A stretch of 64,000 nt of DNA from the sequence record NC_028829.1. One strand, written 5' to 3'. The notes under the pieces are model-generated. The model ran no database searches, was not told the DNA's origin, and saw nothing but the letters and a program-made list of their open reading frames with translations. A program made the position numbers and the translations under genes. Positions 2,723 through 64,000 of this stretch are shown piece by piece; position 1 is the first letter of the stretch; each line of letters opens with the position of its first letter.

Positions 2723-3546
2723 TACGCACCTACAATGTGTTTTAAGTCACGAGCAATTTTCTCGTAACGTTCTGCCATGATTTCGTTCGTTACGCTTTCG
2801 CGCATTGAAACAAGCGTGTCACCTCGCAATGCATTCGCTTCTTTCTCAAGCTGCTCGATGTACATGCGAATGTTATTAACCAACCCATCTGCAACATCGT
2901 GATTCCATGCCATTCGCTTATTGCTAAATCGCTTATCTTCTGTCACTTCACGAATGAACTCAAAAGGCGCGACGAATGCATCTGCATCTTCTTCGTTATT
3001 GAATTCAGCTTCGATGATGTAAAACGGGCGATTGGTGAATCGATCAGCGTCATAATGCACATCGTCAACATCGCCTGACCAACGAACTTTTTTAATCAAA
3101 CCAGTTGGTGTCACTTCAGTTGTATTGTGATTGAGCTTGTCATCTTTCTCAATCGCATCAACGATCAAATCTGTATAACCAGACTCTAGTGGAATGTTGA
3201 TTTCACGCTTTGAAATTCCGTCACCGTGAGGTAACTTGATAGTGAATTCAAGACTTTCAGATGAATCTTCATGCACAGTTCGACGCATACGAGCACCGAG
3301 CTTACGTAGATTCACGCCAGTTAAGTCAGGGCAATCTTTCGGTGCTTTGATTAGATAACCGCGATGTGCCTTCACTCGACTGTTGATATAAAACGAACCA
3401 TCAATAAAAGCGATTTCATTTTTCTTGAAATAACGTTGATATATGTTCATTCCCGTGGTGTCGCTGTCACGATAGCTCAGCCAGTTTACAAATTCGCGAT
3501 ATTGTTCGCCAGTAACTAGCCATTTACGTTCGATTTCAATTTCCAT
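2722..3546 (-). CDS. CYTH/triphosphate-tunnel metalloenzyme-like protein
   Basis: N-terminal EIERKWLV (ExExK), RMRR, IEAEF and REVTEDKRFSN motifs. Confidence 0.75.
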   Translation of the reverse strand: MEIEIERKWLVTGEQYREFVNWLSYRDSDTTGMNIYQRYFKKNEIAFIDGSFYINSRVKAHRGYLIKAPKDCPDLTGVNLRKLGARMRRTVHEDSSESLEFTIKLPHGDGISKREINIPLESGYTDLIVDAIEKDDKLNHNTTEVTPTGLIKKVRWSGDVDDVHYDADRFTNRPFYIIEAEFNNEEDADAFVAPFEFIREVTEDKRFSNKRMAWNHDVADGLVNNIRMYIEQLEKEANALRGDTLVSMRESVTNEIMAERYEKIARDLKHIVGA

Positions 3547-3833
3547 TAGTCTGCCGCTCGTGTAATAAAGTTGTCGTTTTCATCAAGTCCGTGATGTACA
3601 CGGTAGTGCTCATCAACTAATTGCTTAACAGTCGTTGCGTTTAACCCGCGTGAAGCTTCGATAAGTTTAATATCGTGCTCGATTGATGTAATCTGTACTG
3701 CAATGTCAGAAATGATTTTCTGAACAACTGCAATTTCACCACCTTGTTTGTGAGGCAATGCTACAACCCACCCGAATTGTTTTTTCTTCAGAGATTCGAG
3801 CTTTTCATTTAGTAATTCTAACGTGTACTGCAT
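3546..3833 (-). CDS. hypothetical protein
   Basis: Intact ORF, coupled stop/start. Confidence 0.8.
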   Translation of the reverse strand: MQYTLELLNEKLESLKKKQFGWVVALPHKQGGEIAVVQKIISDIAVQITSIEHDIKLIEASRGLNATTVKQLVDEHYRVHHGLDENDNFITRAAD

Positions 3834-24064: not shown

Positions 24065-24397
24065 TTAATATGGATATGGTGGAACTGGCTCACCGTCAAT
24101 CGCTGCTTTAACTTGCAAGTAGATTTTGTACTTCTCTTCTTCAATACTCAAATCACTACCAATCTCACGTTGCATATGATAGTTTAATATATCAACATGA
24201 GAGTAGAAACGATGTACGGTCTTGCAGTCAATACAACGAACATCACGCCAATTCATACCGCCATCTGAGCCATTCGTATAAGTGACTCTTGTATGACGAC
24301 ATTTATCACGCTCTTCGTCAATCTCTTTCTGAAGAGCTTTCATTTGCGCTTCTAATTCAACTATTCTCATTAGATAATCACCATTGACAACCATCAA
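24065..24397 (-). CDS. Cys-containing hypothetical protein
   Basis: ELEAQ...KCRHTRV.Y...DVRCIDC. Confidence 0.75.
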   Translation of the reverse strand: MMVVNGDYLMRIVELEAQMKALQKEIDEERDKCRHTRVTYTNGSDGGMNWRDVRCIDCKTVHRFYSHVDILNYHMQREIGSDLSIEEEKYKIYLQVKAAIDGEPVPPYPY

Positions 24398-25317
24398 TTA
24401 TCTTCATTTTTCTCATAATCACTTAGTTCATACGGCTTCATGTTCGTATAACCTGTATCTGATTCTTTGAATTTCGTCTGTGGCTGTGCATTAACAACAA
24501 ATGAACCGAACTTCTTCGTTTCAAGCCAGTCGATGATCTCATCTAACCACGTCTCAATACCGAAGTAATCACTCCATACTTGTAGACGACGAAACTTACG
24601 AATCGCATCGGCAACGCTGTCTTCATCTACGTCAGTTAGCTTACACTTAGGGCCAGGTAAATCAACATGTTTAACATCGATGAAATCAGGGTGTGACAAG
24701 CTCTTCATTTCACGCCATTTACCATGTACGTCGCGCATATGACGATCATTGGCATACAGATCAGTTGTAATACGACCAATCGAGTATCTAATACCCTCTT
24801 TGAATTGCTTCTCTGTTACATGACCTTGAGCATGACCCGCAGGTGAGATGAAACGTATGATTTCGAAATCACATGAGAACGGTTGACCATAATCACCTTG
24901 TAATACGAAATTGTGAATATCACAACGACCTGTCATACTGACATTACGACATGCATTCGGCTTTAATGTTCTATTCGTGTAATCTTTTTCTTGAGTGTCA
25001 GAAAGTAAAACTACGTCTTTCCCGTTGACATTGATTACACGCTTTTCGTATAAGTCAGATTGAGCTTCTAACGGAGCGCGTGTCTCTACACCATGCGTGT
25101 CATGTTCATCGAGATAGTCATTTGGTAGATAATCTAAACTCCAACGACCGCAACATGAACCACAAGACGCTGGACATAAAAATCCCTTGCGTATGTTCTC
25201 TTGAATGCGCATGGTCTTAGGTACATATAGATTACCCTTATATCGAAAGGGTGTTTTACTCACCATCGACATATACATGGCAATCTTGTCTACTGAATCA
25301 ACTTTCACGCAATGCAC
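24394..25317 (-). CDS. YkgJ/CxxCxxCC-like cysteine-cluster (Fe-S or Zn) protein
   Basis: CPASCGSCC ... ACRNV...GRCDIH ... PFSC. Confidence 0.65.
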   Translation of the reverse strand: MHCVKVDSVDKIAMYMSMVSKTPFRYKGNLYVPKTMRIQENIRKGFLCPASCGSCCGRWSLDYLPNDYLDEHDTHGVETRAPLEAQSDLYEKRVINVNGKDVVLLSDTQEKDYTNRTLKPNACRNVSMTGRCDIHNFVLQGDYGQPFSCDFEIIRFISPAGHAQGHVTEKQFKEGIRYSIGRITTDLYANDRHMRDVHGKWREMKSLSHPDFIDVKHVDLPGPKCKLTDVDEDSVADAIRKFRRLQVWSDYFGIETWLDEIIDWLETKKFGSFVVNAQPQTKFKESDTGYTNMKPYELSDYEKNEDN

Positions 25318-54791: not shown

Positions 54792-55046
54792 TTAAATTCC
54801 TAAAAAACGTTCACGATGTGCAAGCTCTTCATGACTTGCGATTTCTTTTTCTATTTCGTTCTCATTGTAAGAGATTCGACCTTTTGAATCTGACAACATG
54901 ATGATTGTCACTTCTGGGTTGAATTCGATTTCGAACTCTGGCGTGATATAACGCTCTCGACCATCTTCAAAGTATCGAACTTCGACGACGCTGAATTCAC
55001 ATATCGCAAGAGTTTCGAGTCGTTGTCTTAAATGTCTCATTGTCAT
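54792..55046 (-). CDS. hypothetical early protein
   Basis: AAGGA RBS after promoter 55072-55100. Confidence 0.75.
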   Translation of the reverse strand: MTMRHLRQRLETLAICEFSVVEVRYFEDGRERYITPEFEIEFNPEVTIIMLSDSKGRISYNENEIEKEIASHEELAHRERFLGI

Positions 55047-55071
55047 ATTCCTTATATGAATTTACCTTCTC

Positions 55072-55100
55072 ATTGTACATATAAACAATAGCATAGTCAA
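55072..55100. promoter_or_regulatory. overlapping divergent promoters: minus-strand early and plus-strand late-like
   Basis: Minus: TTGACT-17bp-TACAAT; plus: TATAAACA at 55080-87, 33 nt before gp49 ATG. Confidence 0.6.
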
Positions 55101-55119
55101 TAACTTTTTTGAGAAAAAC

Positions 55120-55626
55120 ATGAGCAAACAACTTAAACAATCAGAACTGACAGAATGCCGTAATGAACTAATCATGGATCAATTGGACAGATGTGTGTTG
55201 TGCGGTACTAAATTGAGTGAAGAGAAAAGCACGCCACATACTGACCACGACCACAACACGGGGCATATTCGAGGCGTTCTGTGTCGAGCGTGCAATACTT
55301 ACGAAGGCGTTGTGATTCATAAGTTTACAAGAAGTGGTTTGAAAGGTCGTGGAATTGATTACATTCAGTGGCTTAAAAATCTAGTAGAATACCTAGAAGC
55401 TGATTACTCAGATAATGATTATCACCCTCAGCACCCAAAAGACCAAACTAAGATCTTCAGTCGATTAAAACTGCAAGAACAAAAAGAACATTTAGACAGT
55501 CTAGGTATTAAGTACCCAGATGGTGCGAAGAAAAGCGAATTGGAAAAGATTTACAGAAAGAGTTTCTTGAATAACCCGCGTTGTGATTTTGACAACAACA
55601 AGTATGGTTATGGAGATGACGAATAG
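55120..55626 (+). CDS. 49: recombination endonuclease VII (Holliday junction resolvase)
   Basis: CVLC, DHDH.TGHIRGVLC.ACN..EG, WL.NLV.YL.ADY...YHP.H. Confidence 0.95.
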   Translation: MSKQLKQSELTECRNELIMDQLDRCVLCGTKLSEEKSTPHTDHDHNTGHIRGVLCRACNTYEGVVIHKFTRSGLKGRGIDYIQWLKNLVEYLEADYSDNDYHPQHPKDQTKIFSRLKLQEQKEHLDSLGIKYPDGAKKSELEKIYRKSFLNNPRCDFDNNKYGYGDDE

Positions 55627-55627
55627 C

Positions 55628-55656
55628 AAAAAGGGAGCAATTAGCTCCCTTTTTTT
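55628..55656. terminator. bidirectional terminator
   Basis: A5-GGGAGC-AATTA-GCTCCC-T7; identical core to 45446-45474. Confidence 0.9.
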
Positions 55657-56044
55657 ATACAATGATAGTTTCAGTACCGATTGTAATGACTGTTTGTGTC
55701 TTGACTTCAATCGTGTTGTTCATGTCTTCGTTCAAGCTGATCATTTCTTCAATGTCATCGCTCTCGAATGCTTCATGGTCGAACATGATTTCAGTGATTG
55801 ACCAATCTTCACCTTGAGACTCACTCCAAGCCAGTGCCATGTCGCGCTGTTCTTCATGTATGCAAACTTCAGCTTCTGTTTCAGAATGCTTACCGTCTAG
55901 GTCACTGAAAGAAAAGCTAAATGCGCAAATCGCATCTTCATATTTCTCAACGAACTCAGCCGTAACCCAGCACGTGTGTGCTGCGGTCGCGTTGCTATAG
56001 TAGCCAGTTGCTGATACTTCAATTAGTCTAAGATTGTCGTTCAT
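55655..56044 (-). CDS. acidic hypothetical protein
   Basis: GAGG RBS; start moved to MNDNLR. Confidence 0.75.
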   Translation of the reverse strand: MNDNLRLIEVSATGYYSNATAAHTCWVTAEFVEKYEDAICAFSFSFSDLDGKHSETEAEVCIHEEQRDMALAWSESQGEDWSITEIMFDHEAFESDDIEEMISLNEDMNNTIEVKTQTVITIGTETIIV

Positions 56045-56046
56045 TG

Positions 56047-56385
56047 TTATGCCTCGTCGTCGCGATATACAGCCGCGATGTTTTTGTAGTGTGTATGCAC
56101 CCATAGCGCACGATCTTGATCGTCTGGCTTCATGATACCTTCGATAATGCGTGGGTCAGGTACGTTTTTGATATTACCTAGTGGTAATAGAACTTTGTCA
56201 CCTACTTTGATGACCTTTTGGTCTACGTCTTCGCCGACAGAAATCACAATACCGTGAAGCGGAACTTCGGGTTGAGTAGCACGCCCGAGAACGATACCAC
56301 CTTCAGATTTGATTTCTTCACCTTCTTTAACTGCTTTAGTGTCGATGATGATTTGTTCGCCCATTGCGTGTGCTTTAAGTGTCAT
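56047..56385 (-). CDS. 31: GroES-like co-chaperonin for capsid assembly
   Basis: GEQII, mobile loop KSEGGIVLG, G.VISVG..V, KVGDKV.LP, VPDP, HYKNI.AVY. Confidence 0.9.
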   Translation of the reverse strand: MTLKAHAMGEQIIIDTKAVKEGEEIKSEGGIVLGRATQPEVPLHGIVISVGEDVDQKVIKVGDKVLLPLGNIKNVPDPRIIEGIMKPDDQDRALWVHTHYKNIAAVYRDDEA

Positions 56386-56591
56386 TATTTCTCTCGTCTT
56401 TTGTATTTGTTTCGTGTTGCTTCAAATGCTGCAATGCGTTCGTCTGTAGCTTTCTTTCGCTCTTCAAACTCACGACATTTCTTGCGCATATTACCATCTT
56501 CGATGTCATAATCTCGACTCTCAGGACCACGTTGGTCCCAACCAATCCAGAAGTTATTCACGTCATCGAGTAATTCTTTTTCTGTAGCCAT
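56385..56591 (-). CDS. hypothetical protein
   Basis: Intact ORF coupled to gene 31. Confidence 0.7.
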   Translation of the reverse strand: MATEKELLDDVNNFWIGWDQRGPESRDYDIEDGNMRKKCREFEERKKATDERIAAFEATRNKYKRREK

Positions 56592-56685
56592 TATATAGAT
56601 CTCACGAAAGTTGATGATTTGATGAGTTAGGGCCCATCACTCCTATTTGTTGATCGCTGTTTTATCAGCGCACTGCGACCGTCTC

Positions 56686-56895
56686 TCAGTGCGGACTATT
56701 TAGTTCAAACCCGCGGAAGTCGTCGTATGTTCTTGTGTATACGTCGCCTAGTTCGCTCGTGTAAGTGATAGCATTGTACCACTTACCGTCGAACTTGAGT
56801 TTGCCTTTACTCGTTACTGTATACACATTGCCCGTCTTCTTGTGAATAATCCACTGTCCGACGCGCAAGTGTTCAGCAAACGGGTCATTAGTCAA
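56686..56895 (-). CDS. DUF1653-like small SH3-fold protein
   Basis: W.HKKTGNVYTV...AITY......YTR..DDF..F. Confidence 0.6.
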   Translation of the reverse strand: MTNDPFAEHLRVGQWIIHKKTGNVYTVTSKGKLKFDGKWYNAITYTSELGDVYTRTYDDFRGFELNSPH

Positions 56896-57163
56896 ACGAT
56901 TTCACTTCGCGTAAATTAGCTCGTTTGAATGAACGCCAGCCATTAGCTTCAAGATCGAAGTAACCGCATGTCGCTTTTTGCTTTTCTGTTTTCTCTGGCT
57001 TTGTCTCACCTTCAGCTAAAGGCTTTTCTTTCGGGTGAAACTCAGCAGGGATGAAGTCGAGATTGCGCGTACCAGTTACAGTCTTAATAGAACCATCTGC
57101 TTTCTCAAATTCAAATGTGACTTTACCATTTTTCAGCAAGTCGTCGATATTCACTTCAATCAT
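56888..57163 (-). CDS. WYL_2-like SH3-fold protein
   Basis: F.F.KADGS....GT.N...YFDLEANGWRSF. Confidence 0.7.
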   Translation of the reverse strand: MIEVNIDDLLKNGKVTFEFEKADGSIKTVTGTRNLDFIPAEFHPKEKPLAEGETKPEKTEKQKATCGYFDLEANGWRSFKRANLREVKSFD

Positions 57164-57172
57164 GTTTTAACC

Positions 57173-57781
57173 TCACATAAAGAAATAGGGATTTTCAAGA
57201 GTCTTGAACTCGTTTACGACTGTCATCTTAAACGTCTTCAAGTCGATGTTAAACACTTTATTTGGCTCAATATGCTCTGGAGTTAAAATCGTTCGCGTGC
57301 TGCTAAACGATGTACCGTCTTCGCTCATGAACAACGGGCTAATTTCATTACGAAATACACGCAAATTGCCGTTAATGAAGTGAAAACAAGCAAACGTACC
57401 GTCAAGTTCGTTTAATTTGCCGTAGCAAATCGCTTCAGCGATGTGTGCAGTATCCCATTCTTGAGTCTGTTTTTTCATGTAATGATCTTTAAGAATGCCA
57501 TTATGCCACACGTGTGAATCATGCAACTGACCGTTCTCTTCAATTGTTACAATGGCGGGATGTGCTTGAGCACTTGTTCCCGTTGGTGCTTGTACATGAC
57601 AGATATAAAAATCTGCACTATCAGGCACATTAGTTGTATTGAACGCCCCTGTAAACTTGTGAACCGTCACGTGACCGTTCTTAAACGTACTCACAGAGTG
57701 AGTACGCGAACCACGATGAATGTTACTCTTTGACAATTCAATAAGCTCTTGCTTGCTTCTAGCAGCAAATAGTCCACACAT
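57173..57781 (-). CDS. stand-alone class II (Ntn) glutamine amidotransferase domain
   Basis: Met-Cys-Gly N-terminus, HRG, H.QAPT, AHP, WHNGIL, DT..IA, DGTFAC; ATG overlaps queC stop. Confidence 0.8.
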   Translation of the reverse strand: MCGLFAARSKQELIELSKSNIHRGSRTHSVSTFKNGHVTVHKFTGAFNTTNVPDSADFYICHVQAPTGTSAQAHPAIVTIEENGQLHDSHVWHNGILKDHYMKKQTQEWDTAHIAEAICYGKLNELDGTFACFHFINGNLRVFRNEISPLFMSEDGTSFSSTRTILTPEHIEPNKVFNIDLKTFKMTVVNEFKTLENPYFFM

Positions 57782-58497
57782 CAATGACCTGCCTTAGCAA
57801 ATACTTGTTCCCATGGGATGTCAATCGAGTAAGGTGCTGGGTCTTTAATACCCGCCTTACCGAAGTTCATGATGCGTTCAGCACATGACGGACATTTACC
57901 ACAGCTTTCACCTGCTTCGTTAGGGTCGTAACACGTTAGACTATCTTCAAACGGTACACCGAGCTTAACACCAATAGCGATTTCATCTGCCTTTGACATT
58001 CGAGCGAACGGAGCAAGTAATGCAATCTCGTGTTGACGATTCAGTGCAGATATATTGTTCATGCCGTCAAGAAAGTCTTGTGTGCAGTCCCAGTAACCGT
58101 ATGCGTCATGCACTTGAATGCCAGTAAACACCGCTGCACAGCCATTTGCTTGCGCGAATGAGAACGCGATTGTGTTCAATAGCATATTACGATATGGAAC
58201 TTCAGTTGGCGGTTGAGGGTCGCCTAGAACGTCTTGAATAGTTGGCATAGCAACATCTGAACCAGCGATATTTGCACATACAGGTGCTACCACTTCACCT
58301 AAGAATGAGATGTCGATTAGACGATGCTCGATACCGAGCTTTTGACAAGTCAATTTAGCTTTTTCTAGCTCAATTGACTGTTTTTGACCGTAGTAGAACG
58401 ATAATGCAAACACATTGTCTTTGCCGTATTCATCTACTAGTTTGTACGTAAGGATTGTTGAGTCCAAGCCACCGCTTAGAACAGATACTACTTTCAT
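57781..58497 (-). CDS. queC: 7-cyano-7-deazaguanine (preQ0) synthase
   Basis: LSGGLDS, F.YGQK...E, VPYRN, D..GYWDC, K, TCY......CGKCPSC.ER. Confidence 0.96.
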   Translation of the reverse strand: MKVVSVLSGGLDSTILTYKLVDEYGKDNVFALSFYYGQKQSIELEKAKLTCQKLGIEHRLIDISFLGEVVAPVCANIAGSDVAMPTIQDVLGDPQPPTEVPYRNMLLNTIAFSFAQANGCAAVFTGIQVHDAYGYWDCTQDFLDGMNNISALNRQHEIALLAPFARMSKADEIAIGVKLGVPFEDSLTCYDPNEAGESCGKCPSCAERIMNFGKAGIKDPAPYSIDIPWEQVFAKAGH

Positions 58498-58552
58498 TTT
58501 TAACCTCTCAAGTATATGAGTGCTCACAATTGAACACTCATCATAGCTCTTA

Positions 58553-59461
58553 TTACTGACGGAATAAACAACTTCCGTTAGTGTGCGAGACAACTTCACT
58601 ACCAAGTGCTTCTGGTAGTAGTTCTTCATGCGTTGCACGTGCTGGGCAGATATTCCAACCACCGCGACGTGTGTATAACGCTGTTACCATAAGCTCTTGT
58701 GGGTCGAACTTATCAAGTAACGCTTTGTAAATCATTTCAACACATTCTTCATGGAAATGATTCTCTTTACGGAATGACACAATGTATTGCATGAGACTGT
58801 CAATAGTTGGTGTTTTATCACCTTTCATGTACACATACAGATCGCCGAAATCTGGTTGATGCGTCACGCGACAGTTAGAACGTAGATTCGGTGTGAACAC
58901 TTTCATGCGCTTCACGTGAGATTCTTGCAGTAAATCAGCATCTGCACCGCTTTCTGAGTCGAATACAGTGTCTTCAGATACAAATTTGTCAAGTTCTACG
59001 TAACCTGTCATACCGTGCGGCTGCGTTGATCTGATTGTGAAGAAGCTCACTTGTACTTCAGCACCGATGACTTCAGATAGATCACGCGACGCGATAGCTT
59101 CAATTGCACCTTGTACTTCAGCACGAGTCGCAGCGACTTTAGCCATGTTGAAGCTGTTCCAATACAGTTTCATTGATTTACTTTCAACGATATTCGGTGA
59201 ATCGCTTGGGTACACGACTTTAGCCATACCAGATACAGGCAGACCTTGTTCAGTCAGTGCCGATACTTCGAAGCCATGCCATGTATCAAACCCTGCAAAG
59301 TCTTCGTTTGTGATACCGTAATCAGTTCGATTTAGCTCACGCGGGATTGGTACAAGTAAATCTGGTCGAACGTCTACGATATTAACGAAATCGCTGTAAT
59401 CGCCAGCTTTTTTACCTAAATGCTCAGCCGCAATAGCTGATACTTCATCATAATTGCTCAT
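58553..59461 (-). CDS. queF: NADPH-dependent preQ0 reductase, bimodular type
   Basis: D.W..FE.S.L, IVESKSMKLY.NSFN, LRSNCRVTHQPD (catalytic Cys), FHEECVE, YTRRGG. Confidence 0.93.
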   Translation of the reverse strand: MSNYDEVSAIAAEHLGKKAGDYSDFVNIVDVRPDLLVPIPRELNRTDYGITNEDFAGFDTWHGFEVSALTEQGLPVSGMAKVVYPSDSPNIVESKSMKLYWNSFNMAKVAATRAEVQGAIEAIASRDLSEVIGAEVQVSFFTIRSTQPHGMTGYVELDKFVSEDTVFDSESGADADLLQESHVKRMKVFTPNLRSNCRVTHQPDFGDLYVYMKGDKTPTIDSLMQYIVSFRKENHFHEECVEMIYKALLDKFDPQELMVTALYTRRGGWNICPARATHEELLPEALGSEVVSHTNGSCLFRQ

Positions 59462-59476
59462 GTATACCTCATAAAG

Positions 59477-59492
59477 AGCGCCCGTAGGCGCT
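59477..59492 (-). terminator. hairpin or weak terminator between tgt-like gene and queF
   Basis: AGCGCC-TACG-GGCGCT, same core as terminator 42552-42574. Confidence 0.5.
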
Positions 59493-60867
59493 ATTCTTGT
59501 TCTTTGAAAGCTGGGAATTCAGCAGTTGTGCCGCGACGAATACGCATAGATGGTAGCTTGTCAATATGACTTGCGTGCCATCGCTGATATGCAGCAACGT
59601 CTTTCACATCAAGTAGTTTGTCTAAAACGTCTAGACGACGAATCGCAGACCATTTCTTAAACCCTTCTTGCGGTTCTTTTTCTTCTACAACCCCGCCGAA
59701 GAATGATGATAAGTCAACTGCTTTCGGTGTATTCAAGTCAAGAGTTTCGGAGATGATTGCTTGGAAATTATTGACTTGTGATAAGATTATACACATATTA
59801 CAAGCAACTTCAAACACAATATCTTCGTCTGTCATCGTTTCTTTGTCGAGTTCTTTCAACCACAATCGTGTTGCGAACTCCTTGAACTCTTCTTTACCCC
59901 GCGGTAATACATGACCGAAACGACCCCACACTTCATCTAGCATTTCATCTAGTTCACGCGACGGTAATTTCTTACCATCTTTAAAGATACCGTGACCTGA
60001 GATCTTACGACGACGACCGAGCTTATCTGTGTATTCACGATTGGTTAAACAACCAGTGTGAGTTGATGAGTCGTAGCTAATGTGAAAATCGTCACCGAAA
60101 TAACCGCTTCTGATAAGAGCTACAGCAGGCAACAATCGCTTAACAGAACCGACACCTAGCATATGCACAGATTTTTTTGCTTTATCTGGGATATTGAGCT
60201 TCGGAATGACACTCATCATGTCAATAGACTCACGTACGCCGTTACCAATACATGTATCGGCAGCAGCACAACCAGCAATGTGATGCTCAACGCCTTCAAG
60301 TTGTGACATTATACCATCACTGAATGCCTTAAAGTCATCGTCTGAGTTGCCTTGTAAGATTATGTACGGTTTACAATCGCTTTCTTTCTCAAGATATGTT
60401 TCAATCTGAGCGCGTATGTTCTTACCTGTTTTAACACCGTATTTGTACGCTAGATCATACATGAAGACCTTGTCTTTCGTGTTGATACGAGCAGAACCAC
60501 CACCTTGTGCTTCATTGTGCAACGGGATTTCATCGAAACACATGCCAATATCACCAGACTCTGCTTGATTCTCGTAAACTGCTTTACGAAGTTCTGGTGT
60601 ATTCTCTAGACCTAAGTTAACAATCTGAAGACCGCCAGAATCGACATGAATCTTGTATACAGAATCACCGAACAATTCTTTAATTTGCTTACCGACTTTC
60701 TTTTCAGTGTATGCGTTATACAACATACTGATTTTATGAACACCGTCGAGATCTTGTGCTGTGTCTAGTATTTTACGCAAATAGGACGTGTCAACCACGT
60801 CCATTAGTTTATGTGCTGCACCAAGACGAGCATGACCCGTCGCAGACATAACGTATTCAATTATCAT
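59491..60867 (-). CDS. TGT-fold transglycosylase, DpdA/DpdA2-like (7-deazaguanine insertion)
   Basis: DSGGLQI, MCFDE, ILQG, HMLGVG, SYDSS motifs; no CxCxxC Zn site; embedded in Q-gene cluster. Confidence 0.8.
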   Translation of the reverse strand: MIIEYVMSATGHARLGAAHKLMDVVDTSYLRKILDTAQDLDGVHKISMLYNAYTEKKVGKQIKELFGDSVYKIHVDSGGLQIVNLGLENTPELRKAVYENQAESGDIGMCFDEIPLHNEAQGGGSARINTKDKVFMYDLAYKYGVKTGKNIRAQIETYLEKESDCKPYIILQGNSDDDFKAFSDGIMSQLEGVEHHIAGCAAADTCIGNGVRESIDMMSVIPKLNIPDKAKKSVHMLGVGSVKRLLPAVALIRSGYFGDDFHISYDSSTHTGCLTNREYTDKLGRRRKISGHGIFKDGKKLPSRELDEMLDEVWGRFGHVLPRGKEEFKEFATRLWLKELDKETMTDEDIVFEVACNMCIILSQVNNFQAIISETLDLNTPKAVDLSSFFGGVVEEKEPQEGFKKWSAIRRLDVLDKLLDVKDVAAYQRWHASHIDKLPSMRIRRGTTAEFPAFKEQE

Positions 60868-60870
60868 CAA

Positions 60871-61539
60871 TTACCCTCGTGCTAGAGACATGAATTCGGC
60901 GCGTGCTTCTGGTTCGGTACGAAATGCACCTGATAGGTGACTTGTAACAGTGCTTGAGTTGTTGTCTTCAACACCGCGTGCCTTGACGCAATAGTGTTTT
61001 GCGTCGATCAATACTGCCACGTCTTCAGTTTCAAGAATGAACTTCAGTGCTTCAGCGATTTGAACAGTCAAACGCTCTTGAATCTGTGGGCGTCGAGCAA
61101 AGTACTCGACGATGCGATTCATCTTAGAAAGACCAAGTACTTTCTTATTTGGGATATATGCAACTGTTGCAAAGCCGTCGATTGTTACGATGTGATGCTC
61201 ACATTGTGAAAGAACAGTAATGCCTTTTTCACAAACCATCTGATCGTAGTTCATTTTGTTGTCTACAGCAGTACATTTAGGGAACATATCTGGTGATAGA
61301 CCGCTCATGAGTTCATTGACCATCATCTTAGCCCAACGCTTCGGTGTATCAACAAGTGAATCGTCAGTAAGGTCAAGACCTAGAGCTTGCATGATGTCAG
61401 TGAATCGATCTTCAAGAATTACTTTCTTTTCATCATCAGTTAGACCGTTTTCAACAGTCGGCGTGTGCATTCCGATTTCACGAAGATGCGCTTCAACTTT
61501 TTGTCCAAGAATTGGATCTACTTTATTTTTGTCTAACAT
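60871..61539 (-). CDS. folE: GTP cyclohydrolase I
   Basis: DTPKRWAKM, SQCEHH, GLSKMNRIVE.FARRPQIQERLT, H.C...RG. Confidence 0.97.
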   Translation of the reverse strand: MLDKNKVDPILGQKVEAHLREIGMHTPTVENGLTDDEKKVILEDRFTDIMQALGLDLTDDSLVDTPKRWAKMMVNELMSGLSPDMFPKCTAVDNKMNYDQMVCEKGITVLSQCEHHIVTIDGFATVAYIPNKKVLGLSKMNRIVEYFARRPQIQERLTVQIAEALKFILETEDVAVLIDAKHYCVKARGVEDNNSSTVTSHLSGAFRTEPEARAEFMSLARG

Positions 61540-61568
61540 TCTATTTCCTCTTAGTCAGAAAACAATAA

Positions 61569-61615
61569 TAGCACGCCGAAGCGTGCTACTAAACATTAAT
61601 TGTTGATTACTTATA
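61569..61615 (-). promoter_or_regulatory. late-like TATAAGTA (61608-15) followed by UUCG hairpin (61569-88) before folE
   Basis: TAGCACGC-TTCG-GCGTGCTA then TTATTGTTTTT. Confidence 0.55.
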
Positions 61616-62539
61616 GAGTAATTCTTTGTTGATTTTGATGTCAACGACTGCGCCTTTCGAAAGACCTTCAGATACCCATACACGCTGTACACCCATACGC
61701 TGAAACTCGTCTTCGTATGTTTTTGCAATGTAGTTCGCGAGATTTTCAACTGTAGTTTCAGTGTTGATTACGATTGTTTCCTCTGAATCGATGTTCAAAT
61801 AGAAATTACCACGCTGTGAACAATATGCTACCGCACCTTCCGCAGTTAGATTGTCGTCCCATACGATGTAGCCGCTCATTTCTTCAGCAATGCGCTTCAG
61901 TACTTTGCGACCACGACTGTTTAACATGGCATCAACTGCAATGAACGAACGATGCCCATGCGCAATGTTCTGACACCCGTAAGAAGAGCTAGAACGCAAG
62001 CCATGAGCGTAATGAAATGAAACGTGCGTGTTTGCCCATGATGGCAAGTCAAAGCTCTCTGAAAGCTCTACAGTGACGTGTGTGACCGGATAGCCTTGTA
62101 GTTTAAGCTGCTTCAGCAACATATTTTCAAGATACTCGGTTAGATAGTTCATGTACAGCGTATCCGACGGGATGTGAAGATCAGTATCGAATAGCGATAC
62201 ATCGACGATCTCTTGATACCAGTCATTGACAGACGAAACAGCAGTGAATAACGGAGAGTCGATTTGTGTACGGTCACGATTTTCAATATCGCTTAACACA
62301 TATTCACTGTATCCGTTGACAAGAACTAGACGGTGATCAATTGCGTGTTCAGATTCGTCTACTAACTGCTTGATCGCTTTCTTGCAACCGCTGAAGTCAA
62401 TTACGACTTGCTCAGTTTCATCTACTTCGCCGGTGATTTCAACACATAGATTGTAACTCATACCGTTAATTTTACCGTTTTCATCAACGTATGCGTGATC
62501 GATGCATGTGATGTTGTTTAAAAACATTGTACTTTTCAT
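61607..62539 (-). CDS. queD: 6-carboxytetrahydropterin synthase, tandem two-domain QueD-like
   Basis: VIDFSGCKKAIK...DH.L in N-half; HYAHG...GCQNIAHGHRS, TTVENLA, SEGLSKG in C-half. Confidence 0.82.
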   Translation of the reverse strand: MKSTMFLNNITCIDHAYVDENGKINGMSYNLCVEITGEVDETEQVVIDFSGCKKAIKQLVDESEHAIDHRLVLVNGYSEYVLSDIENRDRTQIDSPLFTAVSSVNDWYQEIVDVSLFDTDLHIPSDTLYMNYLTEYLENMLLKQLKLQGYPVTHVTVELSESFDLPSWANTHVSFHYAHGLRSSSSYGCQNIAHGHRSFIAVDAMLNSRGRKVLKRIAEEMSGYIVWDDNLTAEGAVAYCSQRGNFYLNIDSEETIVINTETTVENLANYIAKTYEDEFQRMGVQRVWVSEGLSKGAVVDIKINKELLYK

Positions 62540-62578
62540 ATGTTTCTCTCTTGTTAAAGCTCTATTATAAGTCCGAAT

Positions 62579-62586
62579 TACTTATA
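62579..62586 (-). promoter_or_regulatory. late promoter-like TATAAGTA upstream of queD
   Basis: One mismatch to TATAAATA, 40 nt before ATG. Confidence 0.55.
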
Positions 62587-62593
62587 TTAAACA

Positions 62594-63046
62594 TTATTCG
62601 TCTTCGAACATAATAACTTTCACACCACGAGCATCTAGCCAATGCCACCAATCGGGTTGTGAACCGCTGTAAATCGAACCTACAATGAGAATTTTGATAC
62701 CAGCCGCGACTATCAGCTTGGCACAGTTATGACACGGCGACGTTGTAACATACATAGTCGCGCCTTCAGTAGAAATGCCAGCGCGTGCAGCGTAGCAAAT
62801 CGCGTTTTGTTCCGCATGTATCTCGTGAATTTCTGACCATTCGCGATGTGATAAATCGCCATAGTCTTCGATTTTGTTACAGTGTGTCACACCCGCAGGA
62901 ACACCATTGTAACCGTGTGAGATAATACGATCATTCTTGACGATGACAGCACCTACTTGCTTCTGCTTGCAGGTGCTTTTCTTAGCAAATGACTTGGCGA
63001 TGTCAAGATACACCAAGTCATAATAGCTTTTATTCTTCGGGTACAT
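62594..63046 (-). CDS. cd: dCMP deaminase
   Basis: STC...QVGAVIV, GYNG, HAEQNAI, SPCHNC. Confidence 0.94.
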   Translation of the reverse strand: MYPKNKSYYDLVYLDIAKSFAKKSTCKQKQVGAVIVKNDRIISHGYNGVPAGVTHCNKIEDYGDLSHREWSEIHEIHAEQNAICYAARAGISTEGATMYVTTSPCHNCAKLIVAAGIKILIVGSIYSGSQPDWWHWLDARGVKVIMFEDE

Positions 63047-63363
63047 TACGATAACAGAGCAGATTTAACTAGTTCATCAAACTGCGCATCAGCTTTTTTT
63101 ACGTAAACTGGTGCGTTGATTGTGTTGAAGTCAGCAAGAGCAACAGCAGATAGGTTACGAATGTGATATACTGCGTTGCGCGTCTCTGCGTATACTTTGT
63201 TGTCGATTACTTTGAATGATTCAATCGGCGCAGTTAATGCGTGCTCGCCTTGCTCATGACCAACCATTGAATTGAAGAAACGACCTTTGATGCGATTCGT
63301 CTCAACGAATTCTTTAGAAGTAAGTTCGATTGCAGCAGTGAAGTTAACGTTGAATGTAGTCAT
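63046..63363 (-). CDS. hypothetical protein (similar to 63425..63724)
   Basis: Shared G.....T......VYA.T....Y pattern. Confidence 0.75.
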   Translation of the reverse strand: MTTFNVNFTAAIELTSKEFVETNRIKGRFFNSMVGHEQGEHALTAPIESFKVIDNKVYAETRNAVYHIRNLSAVALADFNTINAPVYVKKADAQFDELVKSALLS

Positions 63364-63424
63364 AATATATTTCTCTCAAAAAGTAATCAAAAATAGTGAA
63401 TTCGTTTGTATTAAAGCAGAATTT

Positions 63425-63724
63425 CTAGTTGTTGTAAAGCGGAATGTTAATACCGCGTTCAGCAGCGTCTTTAATCATTTGCGTAATCTCGTCAAAAGAC
63501 ACGTTGGTTAGTTGATAACGACTCTTAGAGTGCGTCACAGCATACACAATACCGCCATTGATTTCAACATACATGACATTAGAAGTCATGATTTCGCCTG
63601 CGTCATTGAATCGCTCGATTGAGTGACCGCTTGCTTGACCAACTAGAATGTGAGTTTTATTCGGGTTGAACCCTGTGTTCACAAACTGCTTAATTGATAG
63701 TTCTAGCTTACCAGTAATATCCAT
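63425..63724 (-). CDS. hypothetical protein
   Basis: GAGG RBS. Confidence 0.75.
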   Translation of the reverse strand: MDITGKLELSIKQFVNTGFNPNKTHILVGQASGHSIERFNDAGEIMTSNVMYVEINGGIVYAVTHSKSRYQLTNVSFDEITQMIKDAAERGINIPLYNN

Positions 63725-63736
63725 GTTTGTTACCTC

Positions 63737-63931
63737 TTAAAATTCGATGTTTGATGCTTGAACTGTCTGAACAGCACCGATTTTAGCAGGTTTGCCGAAA
63801 CAGTCAACACCGCCTGTGATTCTAACAGTGTAGTTGTCTTTGTTACCAAGACGGTTTACTGAGTTTTCGTCGTGTGAAACGATTTCAACTTCAGTGTATT
63901 TGCCAAAACCTTGATTGATGCGTGCTTTCAT
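63737..63931 (-). CDS. hypothetical early protein
   Basis: GAGAGAACATTATG start. Confidence 0.8.
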   Translation of the reverse strand: MKARINQGFGKYTEVEIVSHDENSVNRLGNKDNYTVRITGGVDCFGKPAKIGAVQTVQASNIEF

Positions 63932-64000
63932 AATGTTCTCTCTCTTTGTTAGTAGTCGATGTCGTTTCGATGTAGCTATAATAGGCGTTTCGTGAAATTC
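63932..64000 (-). promoter_or_regulatory. early promoter cassette (-35 beyond window)
   Basis: TATTAT(63978-83)-AGCTACATCGAAACGAC leader plus GAGAGAACATT RBS. Confidence 0.7.

Follow-up and report, generated by a model that had tools for sequence, protein, structure and literature searches.

The deazaguanine cluster of ValKK3

This work concerns a phage 7-deazaguanine cluster in which a stand-alone amidotransferase-like protein is encoded directly after queC. The window (64,000 nt) corresponds to bases 1-64000 of the genome of Vibrio phage ValKK3, and the cluster occupies its minus strand in the order queD-folE-dpdA2-queF-queC-gat (Table 1). All six genes of this order, which had been proposed in a preliminary description (with a two-domain queD and a TGT/DpdA-like gene in the place of dpdA2), were found, and Pfam and NCBIfam confirmed QueD, FolE, QueF and QueC. 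The N-terminal half of QueD matches NCBIfam QueD, and QueC scores 169.5 bits against TIGR00364, over the cut-off of 150.3. QueF reaches 225 bits against NCBIfam TIGR03138, which is under the cut-off of 293, and its sequence shows the NADPH motif ESKSMKLY and the Cys/Asp motif CRVTHQPD. The hairpin between queD and folE is stable (RNA fold -21.9 kcal/mol, z = -3.84) and is a putative terminator-like or RNA-stability element. No queE lies within the 64-kb window; as the preliminary description had allowed, it is encoded elsewhere, at genome positions 229188-230072 (YP_009201467), and with this QueE from outside the window the preQ0 pathway (FolE, QueD, QueE, QueC) and QueF are complete in ValKK3. 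At the queC/gat junction, GGT CAT TGA runs over ATG TGT GGA in a TGATG, so that the stop codon of queC and the ATG of gat do overlap, by 1 nt. Compared with KVP40 and nt-1, dN/dS is 0.045-0.051 for gat and 0.041-0.065 for queC. Thus, purifying selection on gat equals that on queC, the QueF-less nt-1 included, indicating that the cluster genes are real and selected.

Table 1. Features of the ValKK3 locus, with positions in the window
Feature	Position	Strand	Basis
queD, two-domain 6-carboxytetrahydropterin synthase, 310 aa	61607..62539	-	Pfam PTPS, two stretches
Hairpin with a UUCG loop and a U-rich tract after it, in the queD-folE intergenic region	61566..61591	-	terminator scan
folE, GTP cyclohydrolase I	60871..61539	-	Pfam GTP_cyclohydroI, E = 1.7e-61
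dpdA2, DNA guanine/7-deazaguanine transglycosylase	59491..60867	-	Hutinet 2019 listing; identity to VH7D
queF, bimodular NADPH-dependent preQ0 reductase (giving preQ1)	58553..59461	-	Pfam QueF_N and QueF
queC, 7-cyano-7-deazaguanine (preQ0) synthase, GAT-paired clade	57781..58497	-	Pfam QueC, 1e-52
ORF135 (gat), stand-alone class-II Ntn amidotransferase-like, 202 aa	57173..57781	-	predicted fold, relatives
dpdM homologue, candidate preQ1 methyltransferase, YkgJ/DUF3109-like	24394..25317	-	motif scan, CxxxCxxCC

The cluster is an already published DpdA2-type 7-deazaguanine (dPreQ1) DNA-modification system of a KVP40-like vibriophage: Hutinet 2019 lists DpdA2, FolE, QueD, QueE, QueC and QueF of ValKK3 by name (DpdA2 as YP_009201241 and QueD as YP_009201243 in Suppl. 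Data 1). The preliminary description was unaware of this publication. ValKK3 DpdA2 carries predicted catalytic Asp motifs of the TGT type, with DSGGLQ, FD112, QG173, HxLGxG and SxD266S (SYDSS) as invariant motifs. A tRNA-TGT Zn site had been reported missing, and DpdA2 indeed has no CxCxxC...H cluster; across 16 homologues we found no invariant Cys or His after Asp266. Neither Pfam nor PDB sequences nor sequence profiles matched DpdA2, and its AF2 model has a pLDDT of 83. The proposed DNA target agrees with published work on VH7D DpdA2, to which the ValKK3 protein is 97.8% identical: in E. coli the VH7D enzyme put preQ1 > preQ0 > CDG into DNA (PMC10516641 Table 2), and in this reconstitution DpdA2 alone sufficed, the preQ1 coming from the host. 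Moreover, phi-Grn1, with a cluster 99.5% identical to that of ValKK3, has dPreQ1, a little mdPreQ1 and no dG+ in its DNA (PMC10516641 Table 1).

A dpdM homologue lies 32 kb from the cluster. By tblastn it is 99.7% identical to VH7D (PMC10516641 includes a test of the VH7D DpdM), and it matches the 'YkgJ family cysteine cluster protein' of Pan1 (5e-34) and Cellulophaga phiSM (2e-3); it has no Pfam match. FolE, QueD, QueC and QueE, whose gene is 170 kb away, would convert GTP to preQ0, and QueF would turn preQ0 into preQ1. DpdA2 would exchange guanine in the phage DNA for preQ1 after replication, and DpdM would methylate a small fraction of this DNA preQ1. These steps have been shown in near-identical sister phages, and by analogy the products expected in ValKK3 are dPreQ1 and traces of mdPreQ1.

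Fold, active site and family of ORF135

ORF135, the product of gat, begins with Met1-Cys2-Gly and contains His93-Asn94-Gly95, the two motifs on which its first reading as a GATase had been based. Its AF2 model (pLDDT 93, pTM 0.90) has the class-II Ntn alpha-beta-beta-alpha fold, and the top Foldseek matches were the glutaminase domains of PurF, GlmS/GFAT and EgtC (E 1e-8 to 1e-5, TM 0.6-0.69). ORF135 itself had no Pfam, NCBIfam or PDB sequence match, with GATase_6 and GATase_7 not matched even at E = 10, while 14/22 of its relatives matched GATase_7 and 11/22 matched GATase_6. We assign ORF135 to the GATases because its relatives match GATase_7, its family profile matches GlmS and PurF, and its predicted fold agrees. 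Cys2, Arg23-Gly24, His-Asn-Gly93-95 and Asp110 are invariant across 244 relatives, and the Cys nucleophile follows Met in every relative with an intact N-terminus (239/239). N94-G95, R23-G24 and D110 align to the GlmS/PurF motifs, that is, to the oxyanion Asn-Gly, to Arg26-Gly27 and to the alpha-amino-binding Asp (PurF numbering). As judged from its modelled fold, ORF135 is a class-II (N-terminal Cys) amidotransferase-type enzyme, and its catalytic residues are intact.

In PurF, and also in GlmS and AsnB, Arg73 (PurF numbering) binds the alpha-carboxylate of glutamine. Where this canonical Arg stands, the ORF135 family has Gln64 (242/244), its motif being HxQAPT as compared to HVRYPT or HTRWAT, with Ala65 in place of the gate Tyr/Trp. 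The preliminary description had overlooked the change from Arg to Gln, which, near-invariant and set among otherwise canonical active-site residues, is enzymologically unusual. Together with the altered gate it suggests that the donor of ORF135 may not be free glutamine, or that glutamine may be bound differently. The family is essentially viral (287 contigs in IMG/VR, compared with 5 MAG contigs, all short, in 185,579 genomes). ORF135/gat is the new part of the locus, with no mention in the cluster literature or gene tables as far as these are accessible.

Pairing of gat with queC

Pairing with queC is obligate in our sample: gat lies directly downstream of it in 86/86 loci. The gap measures -16 to +11 nt in 78 of the 86 (31 with a 1-nt overlap and 31 with a 1-nt spacer), and a few loci have an insert of 480-740 nt between the two genes. 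When the search was seeded on QueC, gat was found downstream in 78 of the 80 best relatives. The phages in which gat adjoins queC are diverse (KVP40-like phages, pf16, a 349-kb jumbo vibriophage), and no further conjugating enzyme is conserved beside the pair. The pair co-occurs with QueF in 65 loci, with ArcS2 in 4 and with neither in 17, and in the QueC tree the three classes are intermingled. That the pair is kept whatever the tailoring gene points to the shared QueC step.

The GAT-paired QueCs form their own clade, and the Gat-QueC fusions form a separate one (support 99), which groups with solo QueCs; ValKK3 QueC is 25% identical to the QueC domain of 9g and 31% identical to the solo QueC of CAjan. 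In QueC the PP-loop SGGLDS and Cys189/199/202/205 are invariant, and the paired clade has a conserved loop specific to it, MPTIxDVLGDPxPxT. QueC belongs to the PP-loop ATP pyrophosphatases, resembling Asn_synthase and NAD_synthase in Pfam, and its relatives in that superfamily use glutaminase domains. The partners do not co-diverge tightly, as between ValKK3 and 6E35.1a QueC is 93% identical and GAT only 62%. Furthermore, about 295 of 344 QueC-bearing phage records are without such a GAT, indicating that QueC works without it.

Possible roles of ORF135 and known systems

We propose that ORF135 is probably the glutaminase subunit of a two-protein, glutamine-dependent preQ0 synthase with QueC; the interaction of the two proteins, the amide donor and the transfer of ammonia are what we infer. 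ORF135 would be made in step with QueC through the start/stop overlap, would bind QueC and hydrolyse glutamine or a closely related amide, and would deliver the ammonia to the QueC PP-loop site, where CDG would be adenylated and amidated to ADG and then dehydrated to preQ0. In architecture the enzyme would resemble asparagine synthetase B, except that its two parts would be separate proteins, encoded in the opposite order. Several observations count against this role: Gln64 and Ala65 in the glutamine site, the many phage QueCs without a GAT, the VH7D reconstitution with DpdA2 alone, the few loci with an insert between the genes and the loose co-divergence of the partners.

The preliminary description had offered two readings of the GATase. 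A feeder of ammonia to QueC fits the comparative evidence (86/86, 78/80, independent of QueF and ArcS2), whereas a split archaeosine synthase is disfavoured. In the latter case QueC and ORF135 would make the G+ base from preQ0 or activated ADG, and the phage could hold dPreQ1 and dG+ together. For this there is a precedent, since gat-queC of 9g together with dpdA gives dG+ in E. coli and a class-II GATase is combined with QueC in both 9g and ValKK3. Moreover, nt-1, whose gat is 90% identical to that of ValKK3, has 44 dG+ per 10^6 nt, nt-1 ArcS2 gave only 4-7 dG+ per 10^6 in E. coli, and 17 loci have the pair but neither QueF nor ArcS2. However, dG+ was 0 by LC-MS in phi-Grn1 and phi-ST2 (PMC10516641 Table 1), both with a gat 99.5% identical to that of ValKK3, and nt-1 has a G+ synthase of its own, ArcS2. 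QueF requires the nitrile preQ0, and in 6E35.1a dPreQ1 attains 15% of dG. The GAT profile met the 9g Gat domain with an hhalign probability of 48% over 42 columns, only around HNG, and 9g Gat retains the canonical Arg. With dG+ at zero in these two phages, queC and gat in the reverse of the fusion order, paired QueCs in a clade apart from the fusions (ValKK3 QueC being closer in identity to CAjan than to 9g) and this weak profile match, we regard a split archaeosine synthase as very unlikely.

It is also conceivable, if somewhat unlikely, that ORF135 is a QueC-linked Ntn amidohydrolase whose substrate is not free glutamine (asparagine, a gamma-glutamyl or peptide-bound amide, or a deazapurine amide such as ADG) and which tunes or diverts the QueC reaction. 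The replaced Arg and gate would suit such an enzyme; EgtC, a stand-alone class-II Ntn protein among the structural matches, cleaves gamma-glutamyl conjugates and not glutamine, and QueC homologues with altered nucleophile specificity exist (RoyL). In contrast, an amino-acid amide donor is what the invariant alpha-amino-binding Asp, oxyanion Asn-Gly and Arg23-Gly24 would lead one to expect, the pair has no conserved conjugating enzyme beside it, and the products of the sister phages are ordinary preQ1 and mdPreQ1. We consider it unlikely that QueC-GAT is a virus-specific two-subunit enzyme, not recognised before, in which the Arg to Gln site reflects a different amide donor or product (e.g. the G+ base made directly in pair-bearing phages with neither QueF nor ArcS2); if so, one QueC-GAT module would make different deazaguanines by genomic context. 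Phages do carry auxiliary nitrogen-metabolism genes, but a glutaminase serving general metabolism, or a hitch-hiker unlinked to the pathway, is hardly credible for a gene that follows queC in every locus of very different phages and in nearly all QueC-seeded ones, usually with a start/stop overlap.

The cluster itself is a catalogued anti-restriction DNA modification and nothing new, and the overlooked seventh gene matters modestly. A glutaminase subunit of QueC suggests glutamine-dependent, two-subunit preQ0 synthesis in a large group of T4-like and jumbo phages of marine and aquatic origin. If true, QueC would have acquired a class-II glutaminase twice independently, once in the Gat-QueC fusion and a second time in the pair described here. 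Phages might thereby keep up deazaguanine synthesis when free ammonium runs short, and about 300 protein clusters that are now 'hypothetical' or 'nucleophile aminohydrolase' would be better annotated.

Among known systems, EgtC resembles ORF135 in size (~200-230 aa), fold and N-terminal Cys and in acting in a small-molecule pathway as a protein of its own, but it is only 10-14% identical and cleaves a gamma-glutamyl conjugate, being no ammonia donor. AsnB, NadE and GuaA perform a chemistry like the first QueC half-reaction (carboxylate adenylation, then ammonia from a glutaminase module), and AsnB shares the class-II Ntn GATase fold with ORF135; AsnB has both parts in one chain, the GAT at the N-terminus, whereas the ValKK3 parts are split. 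The Gat-QueC fusion of phage 9g and Crenarchaeota (archaeosine synthase) likewise joins a class-II N-terminal-Cys GATase to a QueC PP-loop enzyme. However, it does so in one chain with the GAT N-terminal, whereas ValKK3 has two ORFs with queC first, and the ValKK3 GAT shows no specific kinship to the fusion, having Gln for the canonical Arg and a QueC of a separate clade. With the DpdA2-type clusters of nt-1, VH7D, phi-Grn1 and phi-ST2 (Hutinet 2019, Cui/Hutinet 2023), ValKK3 has the same cluster, its genes being 98-100% identical to those of VH7D and dpdM also present. The six published genes are without difference, and the seventh, ORF135/gat, comes in addition to the accessible published gene tables.

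The ValKK3 cluster and its published parts

The 5.4-kb region matched Vibrio phage ValKK3 (NC_028829), a Schizotequatrovirus with a 248-kb genome, at 100% identity and at equal coordinates, so that the window corresponds to bases 1-64000 of that genome. The region was present in 48 phage records, vibriophages without exception (identity to ValKK3 99.5% in phi-Grn1, 98.6% in VH7D, 98.5% in phi-ST2 and 86% in KVP40). ORFs, domain matches and the junction sequence confirmed the gene order of the preliminary description, together with the Met-Cys-Gly and HNG motifs of the last gene, gat (ORF135), and the overlap of its start with the queC stop (TGATG, a 1-nt overlap). A longer queC ORF with a GTG start (to 58662) was dropped since it overlaps queF, and the ATG at 58497 was kept as the start.

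Features of the ValKK3 cluster and associated elements
Feature	Position	Strand	Remarks
queE	229188-230072		beyond the window
queD	61607-62539	-	two PTPS-like halves
queD-folE hairpin	61566-61591	-	11 bp, UUCG loop, U-rich tail; -21.9 kcal/mol, z = -3.84
folE	60871-61539	-
dpdA2	59491-60867	-	458 aa, without Pfam match
queF	58553-59461	-
queC	57781-58497	-
queC loop	58203-58245		residues 85-98
ORF135/gat	57173-57781	-	Met-Cys-Gly start; His93-Asn94-Gly95
ORF134, ORF133	56686-57163	-	small; PHROGs of unknown function
dpdM homologue	24394-25317	-	CxxxCxxCC motif; 99.7% identity to VH7D; 32 kb from cluster

It is nearly certain that the cluster belongs to a known system. ValKK3 is named in Supplementary Data 1 of Hutinet et al. 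2019, with entries for DpdA2 (YP_009201241), FolE (ending in 242), QueD (243), QueE (YP_009201467), QueC (239) and QueF/QueF-L (240) (PMC6884629). The absence of queE from the window had been taken to mean that it might be encoded elsewhere, and a search of the genome indeed located it there. The DNA of phi-Grn1 and phi-ST2 contains dPreQ1 (816 and 668 per 10^6 nt) and mdPreQ1 (35 and 44 per 10^6 nt) but neither dPreQ0 nor dG+ (0 for each), and DpdM was shown to yield mdPreQ1 (Cui, Hutinet et al. 2023, PMC10516641). In the more distant relative 6E35.1a, dPreQ1 replaces 15% of dG (PMC12028318). An NADPH motif (ESKSMKLY) and a CxVTxQPD motif are present in the ValKK3 QueF, and because of them we assign it as a reductase, not QueF-L.

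DpdA2 of ValKK3 was 97.8% identical to that of VH7D. The latter, expressed in E. coli, inserted preQ1 at ~2800-3700 per 10^6 nt, preQ0 at a level ~5-fold lower and CDG at a level ~40-fold lower (PMC10516641), so that DNA as the target, which the preliminary description favoured, is established experimentally for the sister protein. The proposed lack of the tRNA-TGT Zn site was likewise borne out: DSGGLQ, FD, QG, HxLGxG and SYDSS were invariant among DpdA2 homologues and a conserved Cys/His cluster was absent. Neither the single sequence nor the profile of DpdA2 matched Pfam, NCBIfam or PDB, and hhalign against DpdA1 of phage 9g gave a probability of 1.5%; the presumed TGT fold is thus taken from the literature and the conserved motifs. 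Between ValKK3 and phage nt-1 (L010:4815-6209) DpdA2 was 61% identical, and the neighbouring QueC and GAT were 92% and 90% identical. The low DpdA2 identity fits the reported preQ0 to preQ1 specificity shift, or gene replacement.

The homologue of dpdM, the candidate preQ1 methyltransferase gene, had no match in KVP40 or nt-1. Two 'hypothetical protein' features lie beneath it in public ValKK3 records, in which its start may be miscalled; such a miscall was reported for phi-ST2 (PMC10516641). As the KVP40 QueC accession was apparently out of place in the published table, a second QueC was sought in ValKK3 by tblastn, and one QueC place only was found. No Rfam family, preQ1 riboswitches included, was matched in 55000-64000, and promoter matches were no more numerous than in shuffled sequence. 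The hairpin between queD and folE may be a terminator, an attenuator or an RNA-stability element within the cluster. Directly 3' of gat lie ORF134, which starts 9 nt past the gat stop, and ORF133, with synteny kept in nt-1.

ORF135 as a class-II Ntn amidotransferase-type protein

ORF135 is a real, strongly constrained gene, because its dN/dS was low (0.045-0.051 against KVP40 and nt-1) and equal to that of queC. Sequence searches of ORF135 against Pfam, NCBIfam and PDB gave no match, and its sole direct match was PHROG 12378, annotated 'unknown function'. Among its 27 close-to-moderate homologues (~200 aa), 22 were tested, and 14 of these matched GATase_7 and 11 GATase_6; the family profile matched the glutaminase domains of GlmS and PurF. 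The AF2 model (pLDDT 93, pTM 0.90) had its best PDB matches in the N-terminal domains of PurF, GlmS/GFAT, EgtC and beta-lactam synthetase. Cys2, Arg23-Gly24, His93-Asn94-Gly95 and Asp110 were invariant in 244 distinct family members. Sequence and model together identify ORF135 as a predicted enzyme of the class-II Ntn amidotransferase type.

The family departs from this type at one position. Its HxQAPT motif aligned to HVRYPT of PurF and HTRWAT of GlmS, so that Gln64 (in 242 of the 244 members) occupies the canonical Arg position and Ala65 the Tyr/Trp gate position. The replaced Arg binds the glutamine alpha-carboxylate in PurF and GlmS structures, and it is retained in the Gat domain of the fused Gat-QueC of phage 9g.

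Pairing of gat with queC

Members of the GAT family come from viruses and form an obligate pair with queC. When 1.84 billion representatives were searched with the family profile, 319 clusters reached E <= 1e-30; almost all were stand-alone proteins, 195-235 aa long, whose match began at residue 1. Relatives were found on 287 IMG/VR contigs, and across 185,579 prokaryotic species (one genome each) there were 5 matches, each on a short MAG contig. We called ORFs in 86 loci (80 from IMG/VR, nt-1, pf16, a 349-kb jumbo vibriophage and three metagenomic assemblies) and compared them by phmmer. In all 86, gat had queC as its immediate 5' neighbour and shared its strand. The distance from queC stop to gat start was -16 to +11 nt in 78 loci (a 1-nt overlap in 31, a 1-nt spacer in 31), and six or seven had a 480-740-nt insert. 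A search seeded with QueC found gat downstream in 78 of the best 80 relatives; of the two exceptions, one contig ended too early, and in the other an ORF was inserted and the 540 nt that followed contained no gat. Among isolate phage records, QueC occurred in 344 and this GAT in only 51. No queC-first QueC-GAT fusion was seen, and two longer relatives have unrelated C-terminal extensions.

The pairing is independent of the enzyme that follows. The pair occurred with QueF in 65 loci, with the separate G+ synthase ArcS2 in 4 (among them nt-1) and with neither in 17, and these classes were interspersed on the QueC tree. In nt-1, which has ArcS2 instead of QueF, gat was 90% identical and purifying selection was unchanged. 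Thus, gat pairing tracks the step of QueC rather than that of the tailoring enzyme.

Several loci had further peculiarities. The inserts of 480-740 nt between queC and gat were seen in L015, L019, L051, L063, L064, L089 and L167; the ORF in the L167 insert is 163 aa long and has an LDMDGV motif, which we read as HAD/NT5C-like, with no gat in the 540 nt up to the contig end. The GAT relative P0127 (349 aa) has DUF3310 fused at its C-terminus, and in L002 and L003 (7014-7256) DUF3310 is encoded by a small gene of its own just upstream of queC, which may reflect a recurrent association. Between ValKK3 and Vibrio phage 6E35.1a (MW824377), QueC was 93% and GAT 62% identical (57173-58497), suggesting that recombination occurred at the queC/gat junction or that GAT evolved much faster in that lineage. 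The commonest metagenomic arrangement was QueE-FolE-QueF-QueC-GAT-QueD (L030, L036, L039-L045 and similar loci), with no DpdA1 or DpdA2 detected within +-8 kb; among QueF-type loci flanked by >= 6 kb on either side, DpdA was missing in 21 of 27. Their transglycosylase may be encoded elsewhere, too divergent, or absent.

Proposed role in preQ0 synthesis

QueC belongs to the PP-loop enzymes, and its similarity to Asn_synthase and NAD_synthase is detectable. Relatives in this group commonly draw ammonia from a glutaminase module, and ammonia is consumed in the first QueC step. In the QueC reaction, two ATP-dependent steps lead from CDG through ADG to preQ0 (PMC5699537). We propose, as the reading with the best support, that ORF135 would join QueC in a heteromeric preQ0 synthase as its glutaminase subunit; the chance of this role is a little better than even.

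The preliminary description had offered two readings, a split Gat-QueC or an ammonia feeder for QueC. The feeder gained from the finding that pairing tracks the QueC step, whereas tree, gene order and the absence of dG+ spoke against the split. In a quick IQ-TREE of 83 QueC sequences, with long branches and thin outgroup sampling, a branch set apart the 70 GAT-linked QueCs (support 66; for 69 of these, 82), and the three Gat-QueC fusions formed a separate clade (support 99) grouped with solo QueCs. The identity of ValKK3 QueC was 25% with the QueC domain of 9g and 31% with the solo QueC of CAjan, the HNG region was the only part of the 9g Gat domain to which the GAT profile aligned, and the order queC-gat is reversed relative to the fusion. 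By these comparisons the pair does not appear to be a fission of Gat-QueC. A split archaeosine synthase is also disfavoured since phages whose gat is 99.5% identical had a dG+ level of 0, QueF requires the nitrile and nt-1 has ArcS2; it is possible in the phages with neither QueF nor ArcS2. With Gln in place of Arg, the amide donor may differ or the role may be modified, and a function unrelated to the deazaguanine pathway is very unlikely given the linkage to queC in every locus.

Paired QueCs share a near-invariant loop, MPTIxDVLGDPxPxT, just before VPxRN, which is variable in solo and fused QueCs, and GATs share an invariant C-terminal FxTxxNPYFF. Both are candidate contact elements, the loop perhaps serving in docking or as a tunnel element. 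The GAT-less locus L096 (Vibrio phage vB_VcorM_GR7B, 2974-4564) has two tandem QueC-like genes, one extremely divergent (branch length ~10).

Cluster identity and the glutaminase-subunit role of ORF135, taken as one statement, seem to us fairly probable. Because the cluster is published and ORF135 was neither listed nor discussed in the literature searched (Hutinet 2019, Cui 2023, the pf16, Tevenvirinae and 2025 Schizotequatrovirus papers; an incomplete coverage), this is a known system carrying one conserved accessory enzyme that is apparently unremarked so far. With ORF135 as glutaminase subunit, the enzyme formed with QueC would resemble AsnB, but split into two proteins.
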